Positions 26,868-64,000 of a stretch of DNA of 64,000 nucleotides are shown one piece after another. The number at the start of each line of letters is the position of its first letter. The first letter of the stretch is position 1. The stretch lies in the NCBI RefSeq assembly GCF_046119375.1, contig NW_027362773.1:154814001-154878000 (forward strand). The letters are read 5' to 3'. This stretch comes from Phyllobates terribilis. Lineage: Eukaryota. Below the pieces are notes generated by a model. The model was not told the DNA's origin, ran no database searches, and saw only the letters and a list, made by a program, of their open reading frames with translations. Position numbers and translations under genes: made by a program.

Positions 26868-27092
26868 GGAGATGCACGGGGGGATGAGAGATGCACATGG
26901 GGGGGGTGAGAGATGCACATGGGGGGGGTGAGAGATGCACATGGGGGGGTGAGAGATGCACATGGGGGGGTGAGAGATGCACATGGGGGGTGAGAGATGC
27001 ACGGGGGGTGAGAGCTGCACATGGGTGGGATGAGAGCTGCACATGGGTGGGATGAGAGCTGCACATGGGGGGGTGAGAGATGCACATGGGGG
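26868..27092. repeat. G-rich minisatellite (GAGAGATGCACATGGGGGGGGT, about 22 bp) inside the hAT element
   Basis: Read directly; related to the 24495 array. Confidence 0.88.
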
Positions 27093-27187
27093 GTTATGTT
27101 TACATAACTTTGTTGCCTTATGAAGGGCAGGGGGGGCCCCCCAAAATTTCTTGCACAGGGGCCCACTACAGTCTGTGTCCGCCCCTG

Positions 27188-27365
27188 ATTCATTGTACAG
27201 GAAGAGGTGAGCTGTGATATCACCTATTGTGAATGATGGATCCTGTGTTATCTGCTGTATATAGAGGTGTTATCAGTCATTGTACAGGAGGAGGGGGAGG
27301 AGAGCTGTGACATCTATTGTGAATGATGGATCCTGTGCTGTGTATAGAGGTGTTACCAGTCATTG
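27188..27365 (+). repeat. Last two units of the 90-bp satellite, right of the hAT insertion
   Basis: ATTCATTGTACAGGAAGAGGTGAGCTGTGATATCACC continues the interrupted unit. Confidence 0.92.
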
Positions 27366-27639: not shown

Positions 27640-28067
27640 CTCTCCTGGGTTGGGGCGTGTCCCTGTAGTGTAGGGGCGTGTCTAGTAATCATAAGGGGCG
27701 GGGATTAATCTGACAGTAGGATTACAAATGATGGGGCGTGGCCTTACTTGGTAAAGTCGTGGTCTGACATTGAAAAGGGGCGGAGTTACGTGTCGCCCTT
27801 CTCGTTTGGACTCGTGGGGAGGCGGGGTCACAGCTTGCAGTGGGCGGTCTCTATCAGGAGGAGGCGTGGCAGATGTTCATTTGTTGCATTTCACCTTATA
27901 GAAATCCAGGATGGGGTTTTCAAGGAGGCGTGGTCTGTCAATGACAGGGCGGAGCTTTCGCGCGCCTAATGCAGGATAGGGCGTGGTCTCGTGTTTACGT
28001 GGGCGGTGTCTGTCAATGGGAAGGGGAGGAGTCACGCCTGCTCAGCTGGTCGGCTCCAAGATGGCGG
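27640..28067 (+). promoter_or_regulatory. FBXO3: FBXO3 CpG-rich TATA-less promoter: about 12 Sp/KLF GC boxes and a YY1 site overlapping the ATG
   Basis: Repeated GGGGCGTG/GGGCGG/AGGCGTGG; CCAAGATGGCGG at 28056-28067. Confidence 0.75.
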
Positions 28068-28152
28068 GGAGCACGGAGCTGAGTCTGGCGGAGCTGCCGT
28101 CCGACCCGCTGCTTCTGATCCTGTCGTACCTGGACTTCCGGGACCTGCTGAG
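28061..28152 (+). CDS. FBXO3: FBXO3 exon 1 (F-box start)
   Basis: MAGSTELSLAELPSDPLLLILSYLDFRDLL; donor GTATCT 28153. Confidence 0.95.
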
Positions 28153-43235: not shown

Positions 43236-44437
43236 CAGGTGCTTCTCACTAAATTAGAATATCATCAAAAAGTTAATTTATTTCAGTTCTTCAATACAAA
43301 AAGTGAATCTCCTATATTATATGAAGTCATTACAGACAGTGATCTATTTCAAGTGTTTATTTCTGTTAACGTTGATGATTATGGCTTACAGTCAATGAAA
43401 ACACAAATGTCATTATCTCAGTAAATTAGAATACTTTATAACAGCTTGAAAAATTATTTTAAAATCTGAAATGTGGTCTTAGTGAAATGTATGGTCAGTA
43501 AATGCCCTCAATACTTGGTCGGGGCTCCTTGTGCATCAATTACTGCATCAATGCGGCAATGTGGCATGGAGGGATCAGCCTGTGGCATGGAGGGATCAGC
43601 CTGTGGCACTGCTGAGGTGTTATGGAAGCCCCGGTGGCTTTGATAGCAGCCTTCAGCTCGTCTGCATTGTTGGGTCTGGGGTCTCTCATCTTCCTCTTGA
43701 CAATACCCCATAGATTCTCTATAATAGATTCTCTATGGGGTTAAGGTCAGGCGAGTTTGCTGACAATCAAGCACAGTGATACTGTTGTGTGTAAACCAGG
43801 TATTGGTACTTTTGACAGTGTGGACAGGGGCCAAGTCCGGCTGGAGAATGACATTTCCATCTCCATAAAGCTTGTCGGCAGAGGGAAGCATGAAGTGCTG
43901 TAACATGTCCTGGTAGATGGCGGCGCTGACTTTGGTCTTGATAAAGCACAGTGGACCTCCACCAGCAGATGACATGGCCCCCCAAACCATCACTGATTGT
44001 GGAGACTTCACACTAGACCTCCAGCAGCTTGGATTGTGGCCTCTCCACTCTTTCTCCAGACTTTGGCACCTTGATTTCCAAATGAAATGCAAAATTTACT
44101 TTGCATTTACTTAGTGTGTCAATGACTGCCTTCTGGACATCTGTCAAGTCAGCAGTCTTCCCCATGATTGTGGAGCCTACTGAAACAGACTAAGGGACCT
44201 TTGTAAACACGTAGGAAGCCTTTGCAGGTGTTTTTTATTAGTTATTCAAATTTGCTGTGATAATGACTTTTATGTTTTTATTGGCTGTAAGCCATAATCA
44301 TCAACATTACCAGAAATAAACACTTGAAATAGATCACTCTTTGTGTAATGACTCTATATAATATGAGTTTCACTTTTTGTAGTGAAGAACTGAAATAAAT
44401 TAACTTTTTGATGATATTCTAATTTAGTGAGAAGCAC
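43236..44437 (-). mobile_element. Second copy of the same defective Tc1 family, TIRs unexpanded
   Basis: TA|CAGGTGCTTCTCACTAAATTAGAATATCATCAAAAAGTTA ... TAACTTTTTGATGATATTCTAATTTAGTGAGAAGCAC; same transposase fragments as 36838-38976. Confidence 0.92.
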
Positions 44438-47052
44438 TCCACAATAACTAAAGGAACCACTACTAGCTGCCACCACCAATCGTTTATACGGGCCGATTGG
44501 GCATCTGTTACAGATAGCCTATGGCTTTAGGGGTGCAGTTTACAGAGCAAAAGGAACATGGCTATTAAATTTCATATATTTTATCCGGAAAAGTAAGCAG
44601 TGTTTATAAAAATATATAAATATTATAGAAAATGGGAACAAAACAATCCGGTATACACAATTACATACAATAAAAAGGGATAACAAAAGAAAAAGTACTA
44701 AACCTGTGTCATGGAAATGGCTCAGAGCTTAGCAGAGGGAGGTATCCCTTAGGAAAACAGACAGAACTACAGCAAGCTTTACCTTCCAGGACCGACAAAA
44801 TACAAAAACCCAAATTCTTCTTTTTATTAGATCAAGGTTACGCCTATATACCTCCCCTTGGTGAGCTAATATGGGGGCTGGTCATGGGATGTGCTGGGAC
44901 TTTTAGAAGATTATGAGATCCCCAACTTTCAGGCTATCTTTGCCCCTGGAGGTCCCAGGTGGTAGATATTGATGTCATGTTTCCTCCAGCGATTTTACCT
45001 TTCTATAGAAACATGGCATGGATAGCATCATCCATCAGATCCAATATTAAGTTAGAGGGGTTAGAATGGCCCTACGATGATGTGAGTGAATGCATTATGT
45101 TTGTTCCTTCGCTACAATGCTGAAAATATATCTCCCAGAAATATTGGATTGATGCAAACCTCAATATTCATACTGACCACTGGCTGCAAACAGTCTAGGG
45201 ACCAGTGGTTTGAACTTGCCTTGGAAGTGTACCTCTCTGCCTCTGTTTAAAGGAGTCCTGGGTTTAGGGTCTGGTTCTCAGAGCAGATCTCCCATTGTAA
45301 TTACCTGGTCACTGCAGGAGGTCCCTGCTTCAACGGATGTTGAAGTGTCCGCTCTTTCTCACTTCTCCTGTTATAATTAGTTTCTTACTTCCCCAGGTAT
45401 AATTAATCCCATATTTAATATGTCCCCACGCCGGAGAAGTCTTTATGGATTTTAATATTTTTCTATGAGAACCGGTAATTAGCAAAGGAGGCAGGAACCC
45501 AATAAAATGTGGGGGGGTTTTTTTGCGGAGGGGGGGGATTAAGCATTGCCCTATGGTGGTTTAGGGGCCAAGGTAGAGTGCTACCTATGCCACAGATGAT
45601 TGGGGTTGTCACATTTCCATCATGGCAGGAATAGAGCTGCCTAGTATTCTCATCGTGAAACGCCAGAAGCCGTCAAAAAGTGATGGAAACTTGTCTACTG
45701 TCAAAATGCTGGGAGTTGTAGTTCAAAACAACTGAACAGCCAGAGATGGAAGAGCACGGCTTTACATGACGATGTCGCTGGAGGCTAGATCTAGAAACTA
45801 CAGAACTTGTTCCACCAGATTCCAGATGTCTGATGGAAGCCCGTCCTCCAGGGCCGCGCCGAATCTGGGTGTTGGTGGGACACGTTACAGAATGTGACCT
45901 CTGCCCGGGTGTCTAACCACCGTGTGCGTCAGGAGGAAGGCTTCACACAAGCACCCGGTACAACACGACTGAACCTTAAATACCTTATGGCTGATGAATC
46001 CATGTCTTCAGATATACAAGTGTTACATAATCCATCCATATACAGTAAAATGACTGCGGTGAAACCATGCAATTTATTTTTTTTTTTTGTAAAAATCCAA
46101 GTTTTTTTTCTCTGAAATTGCAAAAATTGCAGCAAAAGAAGGTAAAAAAAAATTCCGCCCTGGTGCTCCGTTCCCGATCTCCTGCAGCATAGATGAACTT
46201 ACCGCTGCCAAGAAGTGGCAGAGCCGCGCATTTCGTGCTTTGCGTTACATTTGAGTTGGCGTGCCCCGCATCTTACGCCCGCAGCTCTTGTGGATTTTTC
46301 ACAGCATTTCTTTAAAGTCTCGCGCTTTGCTGGCGCTGTAAAACGCAGCGGATTTTCCATAATGAATGGGCAGCGGAAAATCCGTTGTGCATGATCACCG
46401 TAGAGAGAAGTGATCTTGCGGTGCCTGAAATCACTGGGGATGGGATCTTCTGGCAAGGGGGGAGATGGGCGGCTCTTTTTTTGCAATAGACTGCAATTTT
46501 TTCATTTTAAAGAGACATGCATCATTTTTTGGAACAATACATCAGTATGTAAGTGTGCGATTTCCCTACAGCGCTTCCGCTGGAGAAATGAGACATTACA
46601 CTGTGCCTATTCACATCAGTAGGTTGTCTGTAGTATAGGACAGGTTGTCTCCTCCAGGGTGAGAGACGCTCTTTGTAATTACTCCATCCAATGGATGAGG
46701 TCTGAGAAGCGAGGGCCAGACTAGGGTGTATTTAAGGGGGTTTTCTAAACGAAACAACCCCTTTAAACTGATCTCAGGGTCCAGCTGCTGTGTAAGGGTG
46801 TAGGGTATAATCCAGTGATATTATCTTAGATAGCTGCAGTCACAAATCCCACTTGGTGACTTATCAGGTACAGAATGACGCTGATGACACAGCTGCAGGT
46901 GCGTTCTCACGTCACAGCCCTGTATTCAGCCCTGGGGATGTGGGCCGGTTTGTGTCAGACAAGATTTGGCTCCAGATCCTCCGTGTAGTGTCAGAAGAAG
47001 CACGATCCCTCCAGACAGCAGATCTCCGGGACGAGGAGTGGAGACTGTCAAC

Positions 47053-47128
47053 ATGATTCACCAAACCTTACACCTCTGCCTTCTCATCTCCGTCATCGGA
47101 ATCTCATCTGCTGCAGACCCCATACAAG
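47053..47128 (+). CDS. Link gene exon 1, signal peptide
   Basis: MIHQTLHLCLLISVIGISSAADPIQ; donor G|GTGAGC, phase 1. Confidence 0.75.
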
Positions 47129-50100
47129 GTGAGCCGATTGCCCATGTCTTGTCCGTAGCCCTCTGTCTTGAACATTCCTGCTGTCTTCTACCCTATTTAG
47201 GCAACTGTGTCTGTAACCGAGGGACTATGCTATGTTGGGTGCAGAGGTAACAATCAAGCAAGAGGGGTCCCAAAAGCCCCTCTATTATCTTGGGTGCAGA
47301 GGTAACAATTAAACCAGAGGGGACCCAAAAGCCCTTCTATTATCTTGGGTGCAGAGGTAACAAACCAGAGGGGACCCAAAAGCCCTTCTACTAGCTTGGG
47401 TGCAGAGATAACAATTAAAGCAGAGGGGACCCAAAAGCTCCTCTACTAGCTTGGGTGCAGAGATAACAAACCAGAGGGACCCAAAAGTCCCTCTACTAGC
47501 TTGGGTGCAGAGGTAACAATTAAACCAGAGATGACCCAAAAGTCCCTCTACTAGCTTGGGTGCAGAGGTAACAATTAAACCAGAGGGGACCCAAAAGTCC
47601 TTCTACTAGCTTGGTTGCAGAGGTAACAATTAAACCAGAGGGAACCCAAAAGTCCCTCTACCAGCTTGGGTGCAGAGGTAACAAACCAGAGGAGACCCAA
47701 AAGTCCCTCTACTAGCTTGGGTGCAGAGGTAACAATTAAACCAGAGGGGACCCAAAAGCCCCTCTATTAGCTTGGGTGCAGAGGCAACAATTAAACCAGA
47801 GAGGACCCAAAAGTCCCTCTACTAGCTTGGGTGCAGAGGTAACAATTAAACCAGAGGGGACCCAAAAGTCCTTCTACTAGCTTGGGTGCAGAGGTAACAA
47901 TTAAACCAGAGGGAACCCAAAAGTCCCTCTACCAGCTTGGGTGCAGAGGTAACAAACCAGAGGGGACCCAAAAGTCCCTCTACTAGCTTGGGTGCAGAGG
48001 TAACAATTAAACCAGAGGGGACCCAAAAGCCCCTCTATTAGCTTGGGTGCAGAGGTAACAATTAAACCAGAGGAGACCCAAATGTCCCTCTACTAGCTTG
48101 GGTGCAGAGCACTGGTGGACACAGTCAGGAGAGGGCCCCTGGGCACGAACAGAATATGGGCCCTTTGCAGCCTAATAGCCCATCATAATGCACAATTTGA
48201 ACTGCTTTGGAGATGGGAATGGGTCCCCTTACCTTTTGGGCCCCTGTGCGACCACACAGGTTGCACTAATGATATGTCCGCCCCTGGTGCAGAGGTAACA
48301 ATTAAACCAGAGGGGACTCAAAAGCCCCTCTACTAGCACTTAAAAAAAATACAGTGTTGTAAGGCACATGGCGGGTGCGGCCCCTGTTATAAATTTTCCA
48401 TTAGAGCCCAAGGGCATTTGCTTATATTTTTGCAATTTACAAAAACCCTGCCTTCTCTGCCCCACTAATAATACTGCAACCCCACTCAGGATCAGCAAGC
48501 TACAAGCCCTTAAAGGGTAACTTTGTAAAGGCGTGCTCCTGTGTTTTATACACTTATTACCTCCTGTCTCGGTCTATCCTATCTATTATATGCCTGTCTA
48601 ATAACCTTGCATTATATACTTGTGCCTAAAGCAATGGAGACTTTCTAGAAAACGCCAAAATTGGTCATCACAGACCTCCGTCCTGGGACAAAAAGGCCCC
48701 AAACTACTAAGCAGTCAGGATCAAAGACTCACTGGTGTCTTAAACCAGCCAAACATGTATGGGAGGGGTGTCTTAAGTTTTTTTGCCCCAGATGGCAGAT
48801 GATCAGGCTGCTGGATTTTAACATGCCCAATCCTTTCGTGTTCAGAGAAAATAAGCTGCTGCCGGAGGAGACTGTGAGCAGAAAACTTCTGACTTCCCAT
48901 AGAGAATACATGTATGCTGAGCCAAACCGAGCGTAACAAATGATGGAAATTTGTCAATTTTTCTATGTCTTTTGTTCTCTTTATAGCATTTACCATTCAG
49001 CTTAGTTAATTGTATGTTTTTTTAGACCAGACTTTTACGGACGCGGTGATATCAAATAGCTTTAATTTTGAACTGGGAAAAGGGAAGTGATTTACGTTTG
49101 TTTATATATTTTAAATACATTTTTACACATTTATACATTTTTTACTTTATTTTTAAATTCCCTGTAGATCAGTTCAGTTCAAGTGACTGCAATACCAAAC
49201 ACAGCCAAGTGTGGCGCTACGCTAACATATGCATTTAAGCATCTCTCCATCAATGTAATAAATCTTACAAGTGCTCATGAACCTTCCTTTCTGTTTCGTC
49301 CATGTATTGCACAGGGAGTCCATTGATTTCAATGGGGACTTGTAATGCTTTGTTTCTCCTGTAGGGGCACTGCAGGAAAATTGAACACAATTAACATCTA
49401 TTAATGAACCAACTATGGAAATCATTTTTTTTCTTCCTACCAGTAATTTCTGGAGTGTTCATGCCAAACAATATCTCAGTAAATTACGATGGAGCCAAAG
49501 TGGCCTGTGCCGCGCACTACAGCAGACTGGCGACCCTGCAAGATATCACTGTTGCGTTTGCAAAGGGCTATGAGTTCTGCACGTAAGTATGGCCGACAAT
49601 ATGGGGTACCCCATAATATGTTTATAACCATGGCTGTGTGTCGGATTTGTGCCGCCCCATACACCACTGGTATCTAGAAATGTCAGCAGTGAACTTACCA
49701 CTTTTCCTGAGATATCTGTATTAGTAAATACTTGTTTATTCCATAAAAAATAATTCTGGGGAATTTTATCGGACCTCCATAAATTATGTGTCACGGGTGT
49801 GTCAGAGGTGACAGACAGTCGCCCTGCAGTTGGTTGCAGGAGATCTCTACATATGGCATTACAGACACCTTCTTAGATCTGTCTCACTCTAGGACCCAGT
49901 GGCTACCTCCCTGTTGCTGATTGACAGCCTGGCCTGGGTGCTTAAATACTTTGTCTGCAATAGGGAGGTGCCGGTGATATTCACATGTTTCCTTGTGAAA
50001 GCTTGGAGCAAGTGCAGTCTGCTTACTTCCTCTCTGGAACAAAGAGGACGTGTGTGTTATCTCTCTGAAGTCGATTCAAGCTAAGCTATTTTCCCCCTTG

Positions 50101-53100
50101 TTTGTCTACCTTGCTGTCTTTAGTGTTTAGTGGGGACTGACTAGTGCTCATCCCCCCCTTCCCTAGCCAGGGCCAAGCGCTAGGGAAATACAGGGGTAGG
50201 TTCCTGTGCGACGATTTGTGGAGAACGAATATATGGACGTTAGTGGAGACAGGGTGTGGGAGCCAAAACCAACGCCTATTTTTCTCAGGTGTGGGAGCCA
50301 AAACCAAGTGAGGAACAATCAGGGAAAATGTATAATAGAAACAAGTCACCAATTCTGCATTTATCACCAACTCCTGAGAAAAAAATACGGATAGTGAGGC
50401 CGTAACCTATCAGATGATCATCATCAGACTACATAAAGTTAGTTTGTAGTCTGTTACCAAGGAGATGGGAGCTGAATACACAAAATCTTTTTTTCTTTTT
50501 TAAATTTTATATATAGATTTTTAGGGGACTTTTTGCATTAAAGAGTAAGTCTATTATTAGGGATGGAAGATCACTAAGTCCCTATCGTTTGCAACAATGA
50601 GAGGTGGGAGGTTTTGTGTTTTTTTTGGGGGGGGGATATATAGTAAAACAGATATTTAACTATTTTTTTTTAACCAGATGGGGCTGGATAGAGGAGAAGA
50701 GGGTTGCCATGCTCCGTCTGACGCCATTTCAAGCGTGTGCCGATTATAATGTTGGTATTTTGATCAGAGACTGTCCGAACGTTAGGTCCACATTCTGTGT
50801 CAATAGCATCTCAGGTGAGTCCGTCCACGGAGAAATCTGAAAAACTATTATCTTCTCACCCGTCAGCTTTCTGGGCATGTCAGGTAGAAAAAAAAAAGTT
50901 CCTCTATTGTTCCTTTTGGAAAAGTATGACTAGTTGGGTTGTAACACTCCTGTTATTTCTCAATATATCGCCGGACACTGCCCAATCAATGCTGACAGTA
51001 TCAAAGAGTGCAGGGACACGCCCTATTGTCAATTTACTCATGCATTTCCAGGAGGAATAACAGAGGGACACATTATTTCATGATAAAAACAAGGCATGTC
51101 AGGAGAGCGAACAGGTCCAAATACACCATGGATGAAGTAGTGAATTTTGTGGAGACGCAGCGTTTGACGTCTAACCGCTGAACTTTGCTGCGCCGTATTA
51201 CTGATTCGGGGATAGAATTTTAAGTGACCGGTAGAGAAGAGCGAAATGCAATTTTTTTTGATTTGCACAAATCTAGAAAAATGGCAGCCAGCTGGAAGAA
51301 AAGCCCCCAAAAAGAATTATACTCACCTGTCCCAGGTCCGCTCCTCACCTGTCCTGCTGCTGCGTAGATCCACTCCCCGGTCCTCTGACCTTTACTTTGG
51401 ATTTTCCAGTCTCATAATTTATCCCCATCCCTGGCTTTATTATGTTATGGGGTCCGGAGAGATGTCCTATATGGGCACTTTCTGCAAAAAAATAAAAATA
51501 AAAATGGATCACAAATCAAATCAGAACCACATTTTTAAAGATTTGTTCAACCCTAGTGACAGGTGTCAGGGCACAGGGGGTATTAAATTCTTTAGCTTGG
51601 TCACTTTCTAGTGATGCCCCTGGATTGGGTGGGATCCATAGTGGAGCCCATATAGTAGACAACACTTTACACCTATGTATCAGGACCCGTAGGACGCAGA
51701 CCAGTTCACCAGTTTGAGCGCAGCCGGCCAGTTTGAGCGCAGCCGACCAGTTTGCAGACAGCAGGCCAGTTTGACCTCAGCCCACAAGTTTGAGGACAGC
51801 CGGCCAGTTTGAGGACAGCCGGCCAGTTTGAGGACAGAAGGCCAGTTTGAGGACAGCAGGCCAGTTTGAGCGCAGCCGGCCAGTTTGAGCTCAGCAGATC
51901 AGTTTGACTACAGCAGGCCAGTTTGAGCTCAGCAGGCCAGTTTGAGCTCAGCCGACCAGTTTGAGGACAACAGGCCAGTTTGAACTCAGCCCACCAGTTT
52001 GAGCTCAGCAGGCCAATTTGAGCTCAGCAGGCCAGTTTGAGCTCTGGAGGCCAGTTTGAGCTCAGCAGACCAGTTTGAGCACAGCAGGCCAGTTTGAGCA
52101 CAGCGGGCCAGTTTGAGCACAGTGAGCCAGTTTGAGCTCAGTGGGCCAGTTTGAGCTCAGCCGGCCAGTTTGAGCGCAGCCGGCCAGTTTGAGCTCAGCG
52201 GGCCAGTTTGAGCGCAGCCGACCAGTTTGCAGACAGCAGGCCAGTTTGCAGACAGCAGGCCAGTTTGAACTCAGCCCACCAGTTTGAGGACAGCCGGCCA
52301 GTTTGAGGACAGCCGGCCAGTTTGAGGACAGAAGGCCAGTTTGAGGACAGAAGGCCAGTTTGAGGACAGTCGGCCAGTTTGAGGACAGCAGGCCAGTTTG
52401 AGCGCAGCCGGCCAGTTTGAGCTCAACAGATCAGTTTGAGCTCAGCAGGCCAGTTTGAGCGCAGCCGACCAGTTTGCAGACAGCAGGCCAGTTTGAACTC
52501 AGCCCACCAGTTTGAGGACAGCCGGCCAGTTTGAGGACAGAAGGCCAGTTTGAGGACAGCAGGCCAGTCTGAGCGCAGTCGGCCAGTTTGAGCTCAACAG
52601 ATCAGTTTGACGACAGCAGGCCAGTTTGAACTCAGCAGGCCAGTTTGAACTCAGCAGGCCAGTTTGAGCTCAGCAGACCAGTTTGAGCACAGCGGGCCAG
52701 TTTGAGCACAGCGGGCCAGTTTGAGCACAGTGAGCCAGTTTGAGCTCAGTGGGCCAGTTTGAGCTCAGCCGGCCAGTTTGAGCGCAGCCGGCCAGTTTGA
52801 GCGCAGCCGGCCAGTTTGAGCTCAGCGGTCCAGTTTGAGCGCAGCCGACCAGTTTGCAGACAGCAGGCCAGTTTGCAGACAGCAGGCCAGTTTGAACTCA
52901 GCCCACCAGTTTGAGGACAGCCGGCCAGTTTGAGGACAGCTGGCCAGTTTGAGGACAGAAGGCCAGTTTGAGGACAGAAGGCCAGTTTGAGGACAGTCGG
53001 CCAGTTTGAGGACAGCAGGCCAGTTTGACCGCAGCCGGCCAGTTTGAGCTCAACAGATCAGTTTGAGCTCAGCAGGCCAGTTTGAGCTCAGCAGGCCAGT

Positions 53101-56100
53101 TTGAGCTCAGCCCACCAGTTTGAGCTCAGCAGGCCAGTTTGAGCTCAGCCCACCAGTTTGAGCTCAGCAGGCCAATTTGAGCTCAGCAGGCCAGTTTGAG
53201 CTCAGCAGGCCAATTTGAGCGCAGCGGACCAGTTTGAGCACAGCGGGCCAGTTTGAGCACAGCGGGCCAGTTTGAGCACAGCAAGCCAGTTTGAGCTCAG
53301 CCGGGCAGTTTGAGCACAGCCGGGCAGTTTGAGCGCAGCCGGCCAGTTTGAGCTCAGCCGGGCAGTTTGAGCACAGCCGGGCAGTTTGAGCGCAGCCGGC
53401 CAGTTTGAGCTCAGCCGGCCAGTTTGAGCTCAGCGGGCCAGTTTGAGCACAGCGGGCCAGTTTGAGCTCAGCCGGTCAGTTTGAGCGCAGCCGGCCAGTT
53501 TGAGCTCAGCCCGCCAGTTTGAGCTCAGCTGGCCAGTTTGAGCGCAGCGGGCCAGTTTGAGCACAGCGGGCCAGTTTGAGCTCAGCCGGTCAGTTTGAGC
53601 TCAGCGGGCCAGTTTGAGCTCAGCGGGCCAGTTTGAGCGCAGCCGGCCAGTTTGAGCGCAGCCGGCCAGTTTGAGCTCAGTGGGCCAGTTTGAGCGCAGC
53701 CGGTCAGTTTGAGCTCAGCGGGCCAGTTTGAGCGCAGCCGGCCAGTTTGAGCTCAGCGGGCCAGTTTGAGCTCAGCAGGCCAGTTTGTGCTCAGCGGGTC
53801 AGTTTGAGCGCAGCAGATTAATTTGAGTACAGCAGACCAGTTTGAGCGCAGCGGACCAGTTTGAGCGCAGCGGACCAGTTAGTGCTCAGCGGGTCAGTTT
53901 CAGCGCAGCAGATTAATTTGAGTACAGTAGACCAGTTTGAGGGCAGTGGATCAGTTTGAGCACAGCAGACCAGTTCATGTATGACTTAATGATGAAATGT
54001 GGTCTTTCCATACATTCAGGGACGATTCAGATACTTCCTATACCTACCAGTCTTGTCCCGTCCTATGAAAACGCCAGCAAGACCTGCACAGGCAGCGGAC
54101 TCGCCATAGCCACCAAGGAGGAGATAGAGCAGAAAAAAAGCCTCATAACAGACAGTCGGTAAGATGTGATCCATTGTGTGCGAATGGGAGGTATTCTGTG
54201 CTGTTCATCCTGATCCTCCTGGTTCACGACTGCCAGTACTACCGAGACCCTCAGCATATATCTCAGATAGATGTATAGTAAGAAGTCACAGCCGTGAACC
54301 TGACAATCGGTATGGCCGGACTTCTTGTTTTCAACAAACTGTCGTATCTTGTCTCCAAGTGTCTGAATAAAACATTGATTTATCCTAAAAATGCAATAAA
54401 CTTTTGCTCCTGTCCAAACTTTTCAATTATTCTTTTCAAAAGTAACATTAGCAAAAAACATGGCTGCTCTCGTCCAGAAATAGCACCACCTCTGTCCACA
54501 GGTTGTATCCGGTATTGCAGGCTGTCTCTATTGTAGTGAATGCTGCACACAACCTGTGGACGGCTGTAGCACTGTGGGTTTTTTTTTTTAGAAAGCTGCC
54601 ATGTTTCTCTACCCCTGCACAATGTTATATGTGTTATATAGTAACACTGTGCGATATACGATGTGTGACCGTGTCGGTGCTTTTGCTTCCATTAGTCTTG
54701 CCTGGTATAACTGGGGAGTGGGGAAGGTGAGCGGCGGGAGTTTTGAACAGAATTCCTGTGATGAGACGTTAAATTACGCTTCAGCCTTCTGCTATAATCC
54801 GGCCTGTAAGTATTCACCAATCAATGTACTATAAGTACAAGAATAAAAGTATGTATCATCAGGAAATGACCTGATAATACCTATAGTATATATAGATAAC
54901 ACAGGATCCACCAGTCACAATAGGTGATGTCACAGCTCACCTCCTACTCCTCCTGTACAATGCCTGATAACACCTCCTATCTACAGTAGATATCACAGGA
55001 TCCACCATTCACAATAGGTGATGTCACAGCTCACCTCCTCCTCCTGTACAATGACTGATAACACCTCTATATACAGTAGATAACACAGGATCCACCATTC
55101 ACAATAGATGATGTCACAGCTCACCTCCTCCTCCTCCTGTACAATGCCTGATAACACCTCCTATCTACAGTAGATATCACAGGATCCACCATTCGCAATA
55201 GGTGATCTCACAGCTCACCTCCTCCTCCTGTACAATGACTGATAACACCTCTATATACAGTAGATAACACAGGATCCACCATTCAAAATAGATGATGTCA
55301 CAGCTCACCTCCTCCTCCTGCACAATGACTGATAACACCTCTATATACAGTAGATATCACAGGATCCACCATTCACAATAGGTGATGTCACAGCTCACCT
55401 CCTCCTCCTGTACAATGACTGATAACACCTTTATATACAGTAGATAACACAGGATCCACCATTCACAATAGGTGATGTCACAGCTCACCTCCTCCTTCTC
55501 CTGTACAGTGACTGATAACACCTCTATATACAGTAGATAACACAGGATTCAACATTCACAATAGGTGATGTCACAGCTCACTTCCTCCCCCTCCTGTACA
55601 ATGACTGATAACACCTCTATATACAGTAGATAACACAGGATCCACCGTTCACAATAGGTGATGTCACAGCTCACCTCCTCCTTCTCCTGTACAGTGACTG
55701 ATAACACCTCTATATACAGTAGATAACACAGGATCCACCATTCACAGTAGGTGATGTCACAGCTCACCTCCTCCTGTACAATGACTGATAACACCTCTAT
55801 ATACAGTAGTTAACACAGGATCCACCATTCACAATAGGTGATGTCACAGCTCACCCCCTCCTCCTGTACAATGACTGATAACACCTCTATATACAGTAGA
55901 TAGCACAGGATCCACCATTCACAATAGGTGAGGTCACAGCTCACCTCCTCCTTCTGTACAATGACTGATAACACCTCTATATACAGTAGATAACACAGGA
56001 TCCACCATTCACAATAGGTGATGTCACAGCTCACCTCCTCCTCCTGTACAATGACTGATAACACCTCTATATACAGTAGATAGCACAGGATCCACCATTC

Positions 56101-57321
56101 ACAATAGGTGAGGTCACAGCTCACCACCTCCTCCTGTACAATGACTGATAACACCTCTATATACAGTAGATAACACAGGATCCACCATTCACAATAGGTG
56201 ATATCACAGCTCACCTCCACCTGTACAATGACTGATAACACCTCTATATACAGTAGATAACACAGGATTCACCATTCACAATAGGAGATATCACAGCTCA
56301 CCTCCTCCTTCTGTACAATGACTGATAACACCTCTATATACAGTAGATAACACGGGATTCACATTCACAATAGGTGATGTTACAGCTCACCTCCTCCTCC
56401 TGTGCAATGACTGATAACACCTCTATATACAGTAGATAACTCAGGATTCACCATTCACAATAGGAGATATCACAGCTCACCTCCTCCTTCTGTACAATGA
56501 ATGATAACACCTCTATATACAGTAGATAACACAGGGTCCACCATTCACAATATATGAAAATAGATTTTCTAAACTCTTTTGGACCCTCCCCAAAAATGAT
56601 GTATGTGTATTTAGCCCCTGACCTCATGCTTAGGCAATGGTATGGGTCTGTAATACTGATCCCTCAATCTAGGGCTAATTTATACCCTTTAGGTGTATGT
56701 TCACATGATGCATTTTTTTTTTGGTTCACTATTTTTATCTCAAATTTTGGAAAAAAAAAAAAATGGATTGTTTTTGCCCTGTTCACACATAGGATATTTA
56801 TTTTTTGCATGTGGCAAGAAAACCGCAGATGCATTTTGATCCATTTTTTTTTTTTTGCACTATCCCACTTTGATCTCAATGGAGAAAAACTTTAGTAAAA
56901 ATGATGAAAGAATTGATAAACTGCAGATTTGTAAAAGCAGAAAATGCACCAAAGGTAAAAAAAAAAACAACAAAAAAAAAACAGCAGCAAGGGAAAAAAA
57001 ATGAAATGTGTGAATGAGATTTTAGATCACAACGTGTGAATGCAGTCAAAGAAATCTTATAAAAAAAAAAAAAAAATCATGTGAATAAGACTTTTTTATG
57101 CAATTTTGCAAAATCGTGATAAAAATTCATAGTTTTTGCATCAATTTCAGAAAATTATGGTAAAACCGTGAACGCATCATGTGAACATGGCCTTAGTATG
57201 TTTGTGCTGCTTATGAGGAAACCGTATTGTAAAGATGTCATGTGCTCTATGCAAGGAACGACATGTAATGTATTTTGTTCTCTTACAGTATCTGATGTCC
57301 TCATAACAAAAGATAATCGAA
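47053..57321 (+). CDS. Unnamed secreted or cell-surface protein with two tandem Link (Xlink) modules; 3' end outside the window
   Basis: join(47053-47128,49444-49582,50678-50814,54020-54158,54696-54805,57289-57321,...); phases 1,2,1,2,1,1 all compatible; all GT-AG with pyrimidine tracts; signal peptide; Link motifs C...LAT...GYEFC-x-WGWI...C...FC-x-N and AFCYNP. Confidence 0.85.
47237..48337. repeat. 55-bp minisatellite (50-bp variant lacks ATTAA), about 17 copies, Link-gene intron 1
   Basis: GGGTGCAGAGGTAACAATTAAACCAGAGGGGACCCAAAAGTCCCTCTACTAGCTT at 47719, 47774 onward; last unit split by a MITE. Confidence 0.93.
48110..48286. mobile_element. 177-bp hAT-type MITE
   Basis: 8-bp TSD GTGCAGAG at 48102-48109 and 48287-48294; ends CACTGGTGGACA / TGTCCGCCCCTG. 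Confidence 0.85.
49444..49582 (+). CDS. Link gene exon 2, Link-1 N-half
   Basis: VISGVFMPNNISVNYDGAKVACAAHYSRLATLQDITVAFAKGYEFC; 139 nt; donor GTAAGT. Confidence 0.92.
50678..50814 (+). CDS. Link gene exon 3, Link-1 C-half
   Basis: TWGWIEEKRVAMLRLTPFQACADYNVGILIRDCPNVRSTFCVNSIS; 137 nt; donor GTGAGT. Confidence 0.92.
51701..53960. repeat. 19-bp minisatellite, about 119 copies, near-invariant core CAGTTTG, Link-gene intron 3
   Basis: Unit CAGCAGGCCAGTTTGAGCT; period 19 measured at 51918/51937. Confidence 0.96.
54020..54158 (+). CDS. Link gene exon 4, Link-2 N-half
   Basis: GTIQILPIPTSLVPSYENASKTCTGSGLAIATKEEIEQKKSLITDS; 139 nt; donor GTAAGA. Confidence 0.85.
54696..54805 (+). CDS. Link gene exon 5, Link-2 C-half
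   Basis: RLAWYNWGVGKVSGGSFEQNSCDETLNYASAFCYNPA; 110 nt; donor GTAAGT. Confidence 0.85.
54888..56552 (-). repeat. Second array of the 90-bp satellite, about 18 copies, opposite orientation, Link-gene intron 5
   Basis: Reverse complement of the 21417 unit (ACAGGATCCACCATTCACAATAGGTGATGTCACAGCTCACCTCCTCC). Confidence 0.96.
57289..57321 (+). CDS. Link gene candidate exon 6, 33-nt microexon
   Basis: TTTTGTTCTCTTACAG|...|GTAAGT; LSDVLITKDNR; phase 1-1. Confidence 0.6.
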
Positions 57322-57354: not shown

Positions 57355-59005
57355 GACTGCCCAAAAAAATACAGGGAGCACTCAGATAACACATCCTAGA
57401 TCTGAATGAATGAAATATTCTCATTGAATACTTTGCTCTGTACAAAGCTGAATGTGCTGACAACAAAATCACATAAAAATCATCAATGGAAATCACATTT
57501 ATTAACCAATGGAGGCCTGGATTTGGAGTCACCCCCAAAATTAAAGTGGAAAAACACACTACAGGCTGATCCAACTTTGATGTAATGTCCTTAAAACAAG
57601 TCAAAATGAGGCTGAGTATTGTGTGTGGCCTCCACGTGCCTGTATGACCTCCCTACAACGCCTGGGCATGCTCCTGATGAGGCTGAGTATTGTGTGTGGC
57701 CTCCACGTGCCTGTATGACCTCCCTACAACGCCTTGGCATGCTCCTGATGAGGCTGAGTATTGTGTGTGGCCTACACGTGCCTGTATGACCTCCCTACAA
57801 CGCCTGGGCATGCTCCTGATGAGGCTGAGTATTGTGTGTGGCCTCCACGTGCCTGTATGACCTCCCTACAACGCCTGGGCATGCTCCTGATGAGGCTGAG
57901 TATTGTGTGTGGCCTACACGTGCCTGTATGACCTCCCTACAACGCCTGGGCATGCTCCTGATGAGGCTGAGTATTGTGTGTGGCCTCCACGTGCCTGTAT
58001 GACCTCTCTACAACGCCTGGGCATGCTCCTGATGAGGCTGAGTATTGTGTGTGGCCTCCACGTGCCTGTATGACCTCCCTACAACGCCTGGGCATGCTCC
58101 TGATGAGGCTGAGTATTGTGTGTGGCCTCCACGTGCCTGTATGACCTCTCTACAACGCCTGGGCATGCTCCTGATGAGGCTGAGTATTGTGTGTGGCCTC
58201 CACGTGCCTGTATGACCTCCCTACAACGCCTGGGCATGCTCCTGATGAGGCTGAGTATTGTGTGTGGCCTCCACGTGCCTGTATGACCTCCCTACAACGC
58301 CTGGGCATGCTCCTGATGAGGCTGAGTATTGTGTGTGGCCTCCACGTGCCTGTATGACCTCCCTACAACGCCTGGGCATGCTCCTGATGAGGTTGCGGAT
58401 GGTCCCCTGTGGGATCTCCTCCCAGACCTGGACTAAAGCATCCGCCAACTCCTGGACAGTCTGTGGTGCAATGTGACGTTGGTGGATGGAGCGAGACATG
58501 ATGTCCCAGATGTGCTCAATGGGATTCAGGTCTGGGGAAAGGGCGGGCCAGTCCATAGCTTCAATGCCTTCATCTTGCAGGAACTGCTGACACACTCCAG
58601 CCACATGAGGTCTGGCATTGTCCTGCATTAGGAGGAGCCCAGGGCCAACCGCACCAGCATGTGGTCTCACAAGGGGTCTGAGGATCTCATCTCGGTACCT
58701 AATGGCAGTCAGGCTACCTCTGGCGAGCACATGAAGGGCTGTGCGGCCCCCCAAAGAAATGCCACCCCACACCATTACTGACCCACTGCCAAACCGGTCA
58801 TGCTGAAGGATGTTGCAGGCAGCAGATCGCTCTCCACGGCGTCTCCAGACTCTGTCACGTCTGTCACATGTGCTCAGTGTGAACCTGCTTTCATCTGTGA
58901 AGAGCACAGGGCGCCAGTGGCGGCTTTGCCAATCCTGGTGTTCTGTGGCATTTCTTTGGAGGACCGCACAGCCCTCCATGTGCTCGCCAGAGGTAGTCTT
59001 GCTGC
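57355..59005 (-). mobile_element. 5'-truncated Tc1 (DD34E) element with transposase C-terminal half
   Basis: VLFTDESRF...VMVWGGI...MQDNARPH...SPDLNPIEH (34 residues between D and E)...ARGGHTQY; TIR-like TA|GACTGCCCAAAAAAAT at 57355. Confidence 0.93.
57607..58387. repeat. 71-bp tandem array x11 formed from the last codons of the Tc1 transposase
   Basis: Units start 57607, 57678 ... 58317; unique sequence resumes at 58388. Confidence 0.96.
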
Positions 59006-59251
59006 CTCAGTCTGACTTGTTTTTAGGACTGTAATGCAGTGGCTTGCGGCATTACTGTAATGGTCCAGGGTGTGTTTTGGCTGACCATGTACCTGTAATG
59101 CAGGTGCCGGAATGCAACGCACAGAGACACAAGGCGAGGACAGTCAGAAATGTTTGTAAACAGTTTTATACAACAGGTATACTGAAACAAGGGATTAGCA
59201 ACAAGGGTAATGAACAGTGGTTTGAAATATCAGAAAAATACGAAATTTCTC

Positions 59252-59360
59252 AAAATAAGGCGCAGTCTCTTAAAATAAGGCGCAGTCTCTTAAAGTAAGG
59301 CGCAGTCTCTTAAAGTAAGGTGCAGTCTCTTAAAATAAGGCGCAGTCTCTTAAAGTAAGG
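59252..59360. repeat. 20-bp tandem repeat (TAAGGCGCAGTCTCTTAAAR) x5.5 in the Gypsy 3' UTR
   Basis: Read directly; minus strand carries AGAGACTG, as in the 3' UTR of the element at 1-569. Confidence 0.9.
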
Positions 59361-59415
59361 TGATGCCCTCAAGCATGAGAAGCACCACACAAGTTCTTTA
59401 ACCGTGAATTTGGCC

Positions 59416-62400
59416 CTAGCGGGGGTCACCGGTTATTCCCGCTAGGCCGTGAGTCTCTTTCCGGATGAATTCAATTAAATCACGTTGTGCTACTTTAGCC
59501 CCAACCGTCCCCCTCCCAACCTGAGTACTTAAACCCAATTGTCCCCGGTACCGTGGGTGAGCAGTGGAAGTGACGGCCCTGCTCACGTATGCAGCTCCTC
59601 TCTGCTTGGCTGTTGGGGGCAGTCTCTCGAGCCTTGGATAGGGGGGTCCAGGCCTCGTCTGTCGGTGGCCGACGTCGGGTTCCGCGAACTCACTCAGCAC
59701 AGCGATCAGGTTCCTAGTATCCTCAGCAGGCACAGCACTCGAGTCACAACTGTGAGGGATCCGGAGCTCTTTTACCGGTGCCCGGCTGGAGCACCTCTCA
59801 GGCCTCTGGATTTGGCCTGTCACACGGGGTTTCTCAGGACGCAGGGAGCACGTCTGCTCCTCTCTGCTGCTTGGCGCCAAAGACCCCTCAGGTTTGGCGC
59901 GCTGGCCTCTTATCTCTCTGAACTCCTTCCTGGAAGTCACCTGATCGGGTCCAGCCTCTGAATCTCCCCTGCCTGCAACTTCCTTTGTGTGTTTTGGTTC
60001 CGCTTGACTGTCTCTGGCCAGTAGATGGCAGTCTCGCTCCATCCTTGAAACGTCATGTTGAAGTTCTGTTACAAGCTTTTTAGCTCGTTCTACATTCCTC
60101 CCTCCTTTTTGCTCGCCAGTCCTCGGGCGAGTGGACTCCTCGCAGAATTGATGTCTCCTTCCAGGCAGTGCAAGCTCAGACAGGAGTTGGGCACACTCCT
60201 GCGTTTTCTGTTGGATTCGAGACCAGATAAACTCTTCCTGAGCATACCGGTTAGGAGGAATTCCGGCATTAGCCCGCTCAGTTCTGCGGGGCTCTTCTTG
60301 CGGAGGAGACTCCGGGAGATCCGAGGAATCAACTACTGGGGATTGCAAATCATTTCCTGACTCATTCTGACTTCCACTCGGGAGTGGCACCAACGGTTCT
60401 GACGGGCCCAACTGCATTGTGGCCCACCCTTCTTCATCCCCCAAGGTTCCTGTATGTGGCACTTCAGCCAACACGTCTGAGGGCCCAGCCCTGTTACAGA
60501 CTTCTGCTTCAGAGGAGCAAGGTCGCAACATATTACGGTGCAACACCCTGGATGTCGCAGTGTCATCCCCTTCGGGCCTAACCTCGTAGACGGGGTTGTC
60601 TGGGTGAACCTTCTTCACCACCCGATATGGTATTGCCTCCCAACGATGGTCCAGCTTACTCCCAAATCGTTTAGCCCTCACCAGCACTCGGTCTCCTGGC
60701 TGAAGCGATCCACCTGTGGTCGGGGGCCGAACTGCATGCTCTACTTCCTGAAACTTCTGAGCAACCAGTCTTCTCACGGTATGGAGTCGACGCTGGTGTT
60801 CTCGAATCCAGGTACTTGGGCTACTGCCCGGACCGGGGTCTTCTGAGTCTAGCTCCAGTTCGGTGATTTCTCGGCCACTTCTTCCAAACAGCAACATGTA
60901 GGGGGTGTAGCCGGTGGTTGCATGAACTCGATTATTATACACCCACACCAGCTCGGACACGAATTCGGGCCACTTCATCTTTTTGTCCGCTTCCAGTGTT
61001 CGCAACATTTGCAATAGGGTTCGGTTAAAGCGCTCGCAAGCCCCGTTCCCTTGCGGGTGGTAGGGCGTTGTCCGGGAACGGTCGATCCCATAGATGCGGT
61101 ATAGCTCATCCATCACTCGTCCTTGGAAGCAGGCCCCCTGGTCAGAATGTATTCGCTTCGGGCACCCATAAATCCGGATGAAATCTTGACAGATGGCCTT
61201 GGCTGCGGCTTCTGCCGTCTGATCTTTAGTGGGCGTCACTACTGCAAACTTGGTGAAGTGATCAGTCATGACTAAACAGTGTCCATAACCGTTGTATGAA
61301 GTTCCTACCATCAAGTAGTCAATCATCAAGACTTCCAAGGGGGCAGAAGTTCGGATGGTCTGAATGGGAGCTCTTTGCTCCGGGGGCTTGTTCAACTCAC
61401 ACTGGCGACATGTTCGGCAGACCCCCTCGACTTCTTGTCGCAGTTGAGGCCAATACACCAGCCGTTGCAACCACCGGAAGGTCTTTTCTACTCCGAAGTG
61501 AGCACCTCTTCTATGAGCTTCTTGGGCTAGCTGTGTTACTAGTGCTCCTGGAACTACCACTTGCCAGGTAACATCAAACTCTCGAGGCAGCTGGATTCTT
61601 CGGCATAGCAAGCCATCCTTCAGGAGGAGCCTCTCCCACTGGCCTAGGATTTGTAGGGTAGTTGGAAGTGAAGCGGCTCTGGTTTCCTGGTCGGGTCTCT
61701 GATTAAGGGCGACCCATTCTCTCAACTTTGCTAGCTCCGGGTCGGATTGCTGCAGATGTATCCATTCGTCTCTTGAACGTCCCAGAATCTGAGTGGGCCT
61801 CGGCTCCCCTCTGGTCTCTTGGGCGTCGACCACAGCAGCGGCGAACTGGCTGAAATCCGGGATCTCGTCGCCTTCGAGCTCCTCATCTCTGTCCTTCTTC
61901 GGCCCCGCCTGAGTGACCCGGGACAGGGCATCTGCATGTGTGTTCAGGGCCTTGGACCGATAGGCGATTTTATACTGGAATTTGGACATCCTTGCGACCC
62001 ACCGCTGTTCTAACGCGCCCAGTTTGGCGTTCTCCAAGTGGGCCAAAGGGTTGTTATCTGTCCGCACTTGCACTTCTGACCCTGACAGGTACTCAGCAAA
62101 CTTCTCGGTCATGGCCCACACCAGTGCTAGTAGCTCCAGCTTAAACGAACTGTAGTTGTCCGGATTCTTCTCCGTATCTCGGAGTGACCTGCTGGCATAC
62201 GCGATCACTCGCTCTTTCCCTCCTTGTACTTGAGCCAGCACTGCTCCCAGCCCATGCAAGCTTCCATCAGTGTACAACATGAACGGCTGCGAAAAGTCAG
62301 CGTAGGCCAGAATCGGGGCATCTGTTAGCGCCATTTTCAATGCTCGGAATGCCTCTTCTTGTCGTGGGCCCCACTGAATGGGCTGCCGCTTGGCTCCCCC

Positions 62401-64000
62401 GGCTGTTCCTCTCAGCAATTCATTGAGCGGGTTCGCAATCTTAGCGAAGTCTTTAATGAATCTGCGGTAGTATCCAGTGAGCCCCAGGAATGCCCTTAGT
62501 TCCCTTAGATTGGCGGGCGTGGGCCACTTCTGCACGGCAGCTACTTTCTCCGCAGTGGGGTGCACCCCTGCACTGGACACAGTGTGCCCCAGATATTCAA
62601 TTTCTCGTTTGAAGAGACGACACTTACGAGGCTTAATTTTCAGGCCGTGCCTTTGTAGCCGTTCTAACACTTGTTCCAATCGGCGGAGATGATCCTCAAA
62701 CGTTGCGGAATAGATAATTATATCGTCCAGATATATTAAAGTGGCTTCAAAGTTGAGGTCCCCCAAGCATCTCTCCATCAGCCGTTGGAAGGTTCCTGGC
62801 GCATTTGTTAGTCCGAACGGCATTCGATTGAACTCAAACAGGCCCATAGGGAGAACAAAAGCTGTCTTCGGACGATCCTTCTCAGCTACTGGGACCTGCC
62901 AATAGCCACTGGCCAGGTCGAGGGAGGAGAAGAATTTGGCGCTCCCTAGTGCAGATAGAGACTCTTCGATTCGGGGGAGTGGATAGGAGTCCCGTACTGT
63001 ACAGGCATTCAGCTTCCGATAGTCTACGCAGAATCTCAGGGTACCGTCCTTCTTTCGGACCAGCACGATCGGAGCCGCCCAGGGGCTCTGGCTTTCACGG
63101 ATCACACCGTTCTGCAACATGTGGGCCAATAGCTCTTTCACCTCCTGGTACATTTGAGGCGGGATCTGCCGATATCTCTCTCGGATGGGAGCAGTATTTC
63201 CGGTGGGTATTTCGTGCTGAATGTCCCGAGTGCACCCGAAATCATCTTCATGCTGTGCAAACACTCCCTGATATCGCTGTAGAAGTTGTTCGATCTGCCT
63301 CACTTGTCCAGCAGAAAACTCAGTCAGGTTAGCTTCCATTTCTTCCAGGAGGTGGCGTCCAGCCAACGGTTCTCTTCCATGTTCCTGGCTATTGAGGGAC
63401 ACCTCTAGGGTCCATGGTTTTCCTTCCACAGGTGCCAGCCCTATAGCGTCAGCTCTAGTAAGGGCCTCCGGCATTACGCACACTCGCGCCACCTCTTGTC
63501 GGGGCAACAACTGTAAACTGGTGCCACTTAAATTGATGCAGCGCACGGGTACTCGACCGTGCCGCACGGTGGCCAGAGTTCGAGCAATCAGGAGTCCAGA
63601 GGGCGCTTCTTCTCCCTCCATTGGTTCAACTTGAATGTCCACGCCCTCTAAGGACACATGTGCCAGCACCGGCAAAGTGAGTACAGTCTGTCCCACCGGC
63701 AGTGTTATTGTGGCTTCGGGCGGTATCGATACCTTACCAAGGTACTGGGAGGTAGTGGGCAACTTTTGAATCTGACTGACCCGCACGAGGTGCTGGAACA
63801 CTCTCTTGTTAGCTGGGTCTCGAGTGGCGCGGGTCCAGTTGTTTTTGCTACAGCCCTCAGCCAGGAACTGTCCGACTTCTTTCAGCACATTCATGCCCAG
63901 GGTTACAATGGGCCCATCGCCTCCGGGCCCGGTGGTCAGTACAATCCCTTTTCGACCGAGGTCCTTTCCACATGCCCGCACAGACATCCATACTACTCCC
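59416..64000 (-). mobile_element. Ty3/Gypsy pol polyprotein ORF (protease C-end, RT, RNase H, integrase, GPY/F, extension), open to the window edge
   Basis: RT motifs SPWAAPIVLV, RFCVDYRKLN, YLDD (62722-62733); RNase H YTDGS...DALSR; integrase HHCC and D-D(35)-E (D 61318, D 61141, E 61033); no stop in at least 1523 codons. Confidence 0.97.

Follow-up and report, generated by a model that had tools for sequence, protein, structure and literature searches.

A membrane protein with two Link modules encoded beside FBXO3 in Phyllobates terribilis, and its relatives in frogs, Polypteriformes and paddlefish

We analyzed a stretch of 64,000 nucleotides (nt) from the frog Phyllobates terribilis (NCBI RefSeq assembly GCF_046119375.1, contig NW_027362773.1, positions 154,814,001 to 154,878,000 of the forward strand), called the window below, with respect to a gene that encodes two Link modules directly behind a signal peptide. 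An earlier note, made from the letters of the sequence, had proposed this gene as six short exons set among satellites and joined in end phases 1, 2, 1, 2, 1, 1 into a peptide of 211 amino acids (aa) with the N-glycosylation sequons NIS and NAS. All six exons are present, with canonical AG acceptors and GT donors, with those phases, and with an open frame over a spliced product of 211 aa. The sequons fall at N35 and N135, and large satellite arrays occupy introns 1, 3 and 5 and the DNA after exon 6. The gene had been thought to look unannotated, but NCBI already predicts a 316-aa 'uncharacterized protein [Phyllobates terribilis]' (P0014), whose residues 1-211 are 100% identical to the spliced model, and an 'uncharacterized protein' in at least 17 other anurans.

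Gene model and transcripts

The exons in the window are as follows.

47053-47128, plus strand: exon 1, opening on ATG and closing on a GT donor in phase 1; a signal peptide of about 20 aa (cleavage pattern S-S-A before A) and ADPIQ; residues 1-25 of P0014
49444-49582, plus strand: exon 2, 139 nt, between AG and GT; first half of Link-1, with the N35-I-S sequon, C47 and C71
50678-50814, plus strand: exon 3, 137 nt; second half of Link-1, with C92, the extra cysteine C104, and C112
54020-54158, plus strand: exon 4, 139 nt; first half of the divergent Link-2, with the N135-A-S sequon and C140
54696-54805, plus strand: exon 5, 110 nt; second half of Link-2, with a W-Y-N-W-G-V-G motif, the orphan C185, and C196; the second Link cysteine has no counterpart
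57289-57321, plus strand: exon 6, 33 nt; the short stalk LSDVLITKDNR, residues 201-211 of P0014, before a transmembrane exon that lies outside the window

By tblastn alone, exon 6 is a weak match (57% over 21 aa, E 0.15). Residues 213-316 of P0014, mapped against the 64-kb window, found no place in it; the remaining 105 residues, comprising the transmembrane (TM) segment and the tail, are encoded beyond base 64000, and the window holds six of about eight exons. The compact gene of Spea has eight, encoding in turn the signal peptide, Link-1 (exons 2-3), Link-2 (exons 4-5), the stalk (exon 6), the TM segment (exon 7) and the tail (exon 8).

The gene is transcribed. Transcript evidence was drawn from Logan contigs of four public runs of the same organism, placed on 53985-54845. 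Contig depth in that interval is confined to exons 4 and 5 (word depth about 12-70 over the four runs), and the GT..AG joint from 54158 to 54696, which connects the two exons, is present in all four. The neighboring joints appear at the loose contig ends: before exon 4 these spell the last bases of exon 3, and after exon 5 the first 30 bases of exon 6, again in four of four runs. Transcript contigs thus carry three of the joints for which the earlier note had asked junction reads. Contigs reach 347-412 nt upstream of exon 4, where the coding sequence (CDS) counted from the ATG is 352 nt; the contig with 412 nt accordingly accommodates the 352 nt of CDS and 60 nt of untranslated region (UTR), which lends indirect support to the joints between exons 1 and 2 and between exons 2 and 3, as does the identity of P0014 to the model over residues 1-211. 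On the other side, contigs run on for 1.0-1.5 kb past exon 5, which fits the 351 nt of remaining CDS and a 3' UTR. For the interval 49300-50900, of which exons 2 and 3 make up 17%, eight public runs (one organism, two studies) contain about 21% of the sampled words.

Link modules, membrane segment and tail

P0014 consists of the signal peptide, Link-1, Link-2, a 12-aa stalk, a TM helix, a juxtamembrane R-G-N-K-C-I-C-C segment and a cytoplasmic tail of about 80 aa. Link-1 begins 5 residues past the predicted signal cleavage site and is an unambiguous Xlink domain, nearest to those of LYVE-1 and CD44. It scores 54 bits against a Pfam Xlink cut-off of 27. Exon 2 alone matches Xlink with an E-value of 6.5e-5 over profile positions 10-46 of 92, and exon 3 takes up positions 49-78. 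Matches of Link-1 among Protein Data Bank (PDB) sequences are to LYVE-1 (6.5e-8), aggrecan (2.9e-7), CD44 (3.3e-7) and TSG-6 (2e-3), and LYVE-1 is also the best PDB match of exon 3. The four cysteines C47, C71, C92 and C112, in the C1-C4 / C2-C3 pattern of Link modules, are invariant in the anuran alignment except in Mixophyes. In that species (Mixophyes fleayi, P0031), and in no other, the second Link-1 cysteine C71 is replaced by Asp, which may be genuine or may stem from an error in the sequence or its annotation; the replacement would leave C92 unpaired.

Membership of the second module in the Link superfamily was judged by two properties, a Link fold in the order β-α-β-α-β-β-β-β and recognizable sequence kinship to Link modules. 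Link-2 is recognizable only through a profile over 20 species and through comparison of folds. Searched against the PDB, the profile of 20 anuran Link-2 pieces matches TSG-6 (0.0048), LYVE-1 (0.02) and aggrecan (0.022), followed by the C-type lectin domain of E-selectin; Pfam Xlink itself matches 12 of the 20 frog pieces, the P. terribilis copy not being one of them. An AlphaFold2 (AF2) model of Link-2 (predicted local distance difference test 82.7, predicted template modeling (TM) score 0.73) has the order β-α-α-β-β-β-β, and Foldseek places it with the TSG-6 Link module first (TM-score 0.65-0.69, probability 1.0), then with aggrecan G1 and LYVE-1, and only then with C-type lectin-like domains. 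Profile, model and Foldseek agree on the Link fold that had been proposed for this module, and Link-2 is, on its predicted structure, a divergent Link module despite the absence of the disulfide between the second and third cysteines (C2-C3). It arose by an ancient tandem duplication of a two-exon Link cassette: exon 4 equals exon 2 in length (139 nt) and in phases, and the two halves of the ectodomain, aligned with each other, score 38, a value attained by 14 of 2000 shuffles.

Throughout the anuran alignment Link-2 lacks the second Link cysteine, which leaves the third, C185, with no partner inside the module. C185 and the extra Link-1 cysteine C104 occur together in 20 of 21 anurans, and Spea, the remaining one, has neither. 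This joint loss is the pattern expected of a C104-C185 disulfide, within or between chains; within one chain, such a bond would tie the two Link modules together.

P0014 has its hydropathy peak at residues 216-234. The region past position 64000, which the earlier note had suggested searching for an anchor, thus supplies a TM helix and a tail, and the 316-aa product is by its predicted topology a type I membrane glycoprotein of the cell-surface receptor type. The matrix protein that had been considered does not fit this arrangement, since P0014 and all 21 anuran orthologues continue into the helix and a conserved cytoplasmic tail, which makes the protein a type I receptor. Mean pairwise identity over 18 anurans is 66% for the TM and juxtamembrane part, 65% for Link-1, 54% for the tail and 51% for Link-2; within the tail, identity rises to 64% over the last 25 residues. 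The cysteines next to the membrane are candidates for palmitoylation. Near the C-terminus, Y305-[S/T]-N-M is present in 18 of 21 anuran species, and Y281-D-N, further upstream in the tail, in 16 of 21. The YxNM motifs of DAP10 (YINM) and CD28 (YMNM) bind PI3K p85 and Grb2 (PMC5852076), and by analogy the phosphorylated Y-[S/T]-N-M and Y-D-N of the frog protein would recruit Grb2 and PI3K p85. The likeness to CD28 and DAP10 tails lies in a YxNM motif near the C-terminal end and a further Y-D-N before it; it is a resemblance of short motifs without homology, and the fish orthologues described below keep only Y-x-N.

We compared the residues of the ligand-binding face with those of CD44 and LYVE-1, taking the residue roles from PMC11926218 and the correspondences from PDB alignments and a per-column table of 21 species.

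CD44 Arg41-Tyr42: N-I of an N-x-S/T sequon, in 18 of 21 species
CD44 Arg78: K (K72) in most frogs, T in P. terribilis
CD44 Tyr79 / LYVE-1 Tyr87: W73, invariant
CD44 Tyr105: L
LYVE-1 Lys105: A
LYVE-1 Lys108: D
LYVE-1 Trp116: R

Among the LYVE-1 residues, K105 and K108 belong to the basic clasp and Y87 and W116 to the floor of the groove, and of these four the equivalent of Y87 alone stays aromatic. With the hyaluronan-contact residues of CD44 and LYVE-1 replaced in this way, canonical hyaluronan binding looks unlikely; another glycan, a differently bound glycosaminoglycan or a protein ligand would be possible. The β4/β5 loop, which forms the hyaluronan clasp in LYVE-1, is variable in sequence and has the lowest confidence of all parts of the ectodomain model (model residues 67-77). 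In the mechanism that we propose, the ectodomain would act as a lectin-like ligand-binding unit for a glycosaminoglycan or another glycan. The mode of binding would probably differ from that of CD44 and LYVE-1, whose key contact residues are replaced, the equivalent of CD44 Arg41 being a conserved N-glycosylation site.

A family beside FBXO3 and its place among Link proteins

Among 1.84 billion representatives, a phmmer search with the exon-2 peptide led to a Hyperolius protein of 321 aa, which as a query returned 18 anuran proteins, P0014 among them. Members of the family are present in at least 21 anurans, with full-length open reading frames (ORFs) on transcript-like contigs of 1.1-1.9 kb assembled in Logan. 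Proteins of reedfish and bichir (449 aa) and of paddlefish (438 aa, partial) have three Xlink modules each, the same F-M-R-G-N-x-C-I-C-C segment and several tail motifs in common with the frogs. In a maximum-likelihood tree of single modules, whose rows were Link modules of frogs, fishes and bivalves, the first frog module groups with the first fish module (89/91) and the second frog module with the third of the fishes (94/93), while the second fish module stands beside the clade of first modules. These groupings imply that the pair of a canonical N-terminal and a degenerate membrane-proximal Link predates the split of ray-finned fishes and tetrapods. A search with the tail alone (residues 205-316 of P0014; 29 candidates scored) returned anurans of this family only and no other clade.

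The locus is shared as well. At every locus inspected the family gene lies directly downstream of FBXO3, and in Spea it lies upstream of CD59. The upstream gene with FBXO3 domains, on the same strand, has its end 4-10 kb away from the Link gene in reedfish, Spea and paddlefish, and in Spea a CD59-family gene follows 8 kb downstream. The protein had been suggested to be amphibian-specific; the orthologues at the FBXO3-linked locus in reedfish and paddlefish, together with a homologue in bichir, extend it to fishes. In human, FBXO3 and CD59 are direct neighbors at 11p13, in the order LMO2-FBXO3-CD59, with CD44 in the same band about 1.4 Mb away; the order of LMO2, FBXO3 and Link gene in the window matches it. 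If the human order is as given, mammals would have lost the gene, and its origin would lie in the neighborhood of CD44.

We defined the FBXO3-linked multi-Link family by a signal peptide, an N-terminal Link module with an extra cysteine, a membrane-proximal Link module without the second cysteine, a TM segment followed by F-M-[RK]-G-N-x-x-x-C-C, P-x-W-N and H-x-Y-x-N in the tail, and a gene directly downstream of FBXO3. The P. terribilis protein has all of the protein features in the alignments, those of the TM segment and tail, which lie outside the window, being taken from P0014, and FBXO3 exons lie upstream of its gene in the window. The family is an unnamed and uncharacterized lineage of membrane Link receptors of anurans, Polypteriformes and paddlefish. 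Neither a literature search for the family or its architecture nor the survey of C-type lectin-like domains in Fugu (PMC514892) yielded a description of it. The homology searches were lossy, the alignment search having missed its own query members P0008 and P0025. Absence from their output is therefore no evidence of absence, for Xenopus, salamanders, teleosts and amniotes as well, and the taxonomic range is a lower bound. The automatic names given to members ('LYVE1-like' in one frog, 'aggrecan core protein-like', 'PGCB', 'CSPG2') contradict one another and the domain content, and we rejected them as evidence of identity.

Two side observations belong to these searches. Isoform X2 of Dendrobates tinctorius (P0018, 383 aa) has a 67-aa N-terminal extension that matches the translated 5' flank 46853-47056 (plus strand) of the P. 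terribilis gene; that flank has a stop just before the ATG in P. terribilis, and the extension is probably a read-through of the 5' UTR in the D. tinctorius annotation. After the fishes, the next-best matches of the exon-2 peptide are secreted proteins of freshwater mussels with three or four Link modules (P0004, P0005, P0028, P0029) and P0007, a protein of 2386 aa with 8 Link-like stretches, from which it appears that tandem Links without an immunoglobulin (Ig) domain are common outside vertebrates.

The Link proteins of vertebrates are CD44, LYVE-1, TSG-6, the stabilins, SUSD5, the HAPLNs and the lecticans, and we know of no member of this textbook list that is a membrane protein with tandem Links straight after the signal peptide. 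The earlier note had likewise recognized no named family with tandem Links in that place and no Ig domain, and Pfam finds Xlink alone in the full-length protein, with no Ig domain; CUB, Sushi, EGF and fasciclin domains were not found in P0014, P0009, P0025 or P0032 at E ≤ 1. The HAPLNs and lecticans (aggrecan, versican, neurocan, brevican) share the tandem Link pair, and aggrecan G1 is among the best matches of both modules, but they are secreted and carry an Ig V-type domain before the Links, whereas the frog protein has no Ig domain and is anchored in the membrane; it is therefore neither a HAPLN nor a lectican. TSG-6 is the best fold and profile match of Link-2 and, like both modules here, has a minimal Link without extensions; it is, however, a secreted protein of Link and CUB, whereas the frog protein lacks CUB and has a TM helix. 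Lacking CUB, Sushi, EGF and FAS1 domains, the protein is not TSG-6, SUSD5 or a stabilin.

LYVE-1 and CD44 come closest. LYVE-1, a membrane protein of type I topology and about 320 aa, begins with a Link module that is spread over two exons. It gives the best structural match to the ectodomain model (Z 13.8) and the best sequence match to Link-1, and like the frog protein it has an extra cysteine, which in LYVE-1 makes a non-canonical disulfide and a homodimer (PMC5122770). LYVE-1 differs in having a single Link with β0/β7 extensions, a third disulfide and a long Ser/Thr-rich stalk, against two Links and a 12-aa stalk here; its tail is unrelated and its locus is another, the family gene lying at FBXO3-CD59. 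CD44 is likewise a membrane Link receptor, and its Link module is presumably split by an intron after the E-x-C motif, the same place as here. It is unlike the frog protein in its single extended Link, variable stalk exons and ERM (ezrin/radixin/moesin)-binding tail, compared with two modules and no cysteine before Link-1 here, and its contact residues are changed in P. terribilis (R41 to N, Y42 to I, R78 to T, Y79 to W). CD44 and LYVE-1 share the disulfide of the β0-β7 extension (PMC11926218). Since the frog protein has no extension disulfide and more than one Link, it is neither of the two.

The gene model, folds, topology, family and synteny, taken jointly, are in our judgment very probably right. 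The architecture is new among Link-module receptors, although its modules, topology and motifs are each of known types, and each mechanistic step (the ligand, the disulfide, palmitoylation and YxNM signaling) is considerably less certain than the gene model and topology. We tentatively suggest a wider reading, possible but still doubtful as a whole: next to CD44 and LYVE-1, the family would be a third, undescribed lineage of cell-surface Link receptors that originated in their ancestral chromosome region, at FBXO3-CD59. Such an ancient lectin-like signaling receptor would have an N-terminal Link tied by a disulfide to a degenerate membrane-proximal Link, a ligand other than canonically bound hyaluronan and a YxNM signaling tail like those of CD28 and DAP10; frogs and early-branching ray-finned fishes would have retained it, whereas amniotes and probably teleosts would have lost it. 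Several results weigh against the main explanation, of gene model, topology and proposed mechanism. The first two splice joints are supported indirectly, and Link-2 of P. terribilis alone, searched per exon and as a whole piece, has no Pfam or PDB sequence match. Link-2 is acidic (isoelectric point 4.1-5.0) and Link-1 about neutral, which is atypical of a polyanion-binding surface. The pairing of C104 with C185 is inferred from one correlated loss in one species. When the two-domain ectodomain model was compared with aggrecan G1 (VIA-align), only about 92 residues aligned, so a lectican-like tandem arrangement is not established.

Among the other explanations, the one that we take most seriously, while thinking it rather improbable, is that the ectodomain is a protein-binding C-type-lectin-like unit, in the manner of natural killer (NK)-cell receptors or poxvirus A33, for which the Link fold is only a scaffold. 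The non-conserved hyaluronan contacts and the acidic Link-2 would suit it, as would a tail motif of the CD28/DAP10 type, used by immune receptors, and the structural neighbors that follow the Link modules include CD69, NKR-P1, Ly49 and A33. Link-1, however, keeps the invariant W73, and in most species K72, at the positions of CD44 Arg78 and Tyr79, and to our knowledge no Link module has a purely protein ligand. We judge it unlikely that the gene is a divergent copy or co-orthologue of LYVE1 or CD44, and the family one already known by another name. LYVE-1 and CD44 are indeed the best solved relatives of Link-1, the size and type I topology are LYVE-1-like overall, the nearest language-model clusters (leads only) are LYVE1 (0.87), lyve1b (0.84) and CD44 (0.82), and one frog protein bears the automatic name 'LYVE1-like'. 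Such names disagree and carry no weight, and a co-orthologue would have to have gone from one Link module to two (three in fishes) and from a mucin-like to a 12-aa stalk, with no cysteine N-terminal of Link-1 for the β0-β7 extension disulfide (PMC11926218), with a tail that returns this family alone, and at a locus between FBXO3 and CD59 in Spea and beside FBXO3 in three other species.

That the gene encodes a secreted, amphibian-specific matrix- or glycan-binding protein of two Links only is very improbable. The 211 aa encoded in the window do lack a membrane anchor, and matrix proteins, the HAPLNs and lecticans for example, typically carry Links in tandem. P0014 and its orthologues in all 21 anurans, however, go on into the TM helix and conserved tail, contigs extend about 1.5 kb past exon 5, and orthologues exist in fishes. 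A soluble splice or shed form besides the main product is possible. Hardly credible, finally, is a decaying, non-functional gene or fortuitous ORF, for which one could cite the canonical disulfide lost from Link-2 and the introns full of satellites and transposons: frame, cysteines and motifs are intact in 21 anurans and three fishes, and there are spliced transcripts in eight public runs from two studies and the full-length ORFs on transcript-like contigs. The earlier note had named three findings that would overturn its proposal, namely a full-length orthologue of a named gene with this architecture, an absence of spliced reads, and a Link-2 that fails to adopt the fold; we encountered none of them. 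For work on hyaluronan and lectins, the family offers a natural experiment in the repurposing of Link modules, in which contacts are replaced, the Arg41 position would bear a glycan and one disulfide is gone. It also adds a candidate receptor to the matrix or immune biology of amphibians and, if the absence in amniotes is true, a clean case of lineage-specific gene loss. The family is in any case transcribed, conserved across anurans, fixed at its locus beside FBXO3, and at least as old as the ancestor of ray-finned fishes and tetrapods.

Neighboring genes and repeats

On one strand the window holds, in order, an LMO2-like LIM exon, FBXO3 and the Link gene. The other features are these.

9393-10121, plus strand: ORF with a LIM domain at its end (Pfam LIM 5.5e-16), resembling the last exon of LMO2
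27983-36416, plus strand: FBXO3 (F-box, SMI1_KNR4 and ApaG exons), upstream neighbor on the same strand as the Link gene and the syntenic anchor
47235-48109, unstranded: satellite with a 55-bp unit, 16 copies, in intron 1
51709-53975, unstranded: satellite with a 19-bp unit, 119 copies, in intron 3
54865-56552, unstranded: satellite with a 90-bp unit, 18.6 copies, in intron 5
57606-58392, unstranded: satellite with a 71-bp unit, after exon 6
58221-58979, minus strand: ORF of a DDE_3 transposase, in intron 6
59416-63987, minus strand: uninterrupted ORF of 1523 aa with RVT_1, RNase H, integrase zinc-binding and integrase core domains (Ty3/gypsy-type), in intron 6
58221-58979, 12345-12818, 43733-44092 and 37518-37796, minus strand: several relics of DDE_3 or Tc1-mariner-type transposases

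The Ty3/gypsy-type element at 59416-63987 looks like a young insertion, and the transposable elements of intron 6 (58221-63987) have pushed the TM and tail exons beyond the window. Units of the 71-bp satellite overlap the C-terminal coding part of the transposase relic at 58.2 kb. The 90-bp satellite of intron 5 apparently belongs to the same family as a 2.9-kb array at 21188-24114, which lies in the opposite orientation; both arrays translate to a EEVSCDITYCEWWILCYLLYIEVLSVIVQ repeat and give rise to a spurious ORF of 797 aa.

The two N runs of the window, at 7110-7512 and 7524-7861, amount to 741 bases together. The ORF of FBXO3 exon 1 continues into a low-complexity repeat rich in GC (64%; about 28.2-29.4 kb), which is open in three frames. 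GC-rich simple repeats with a strong skew (GC skew up to 0.5) also lie at 24469-25649 and 26846-27223, where they produce long spurious ORFs, rich in P/H/T/S or in G/W/E/M on the two strands.

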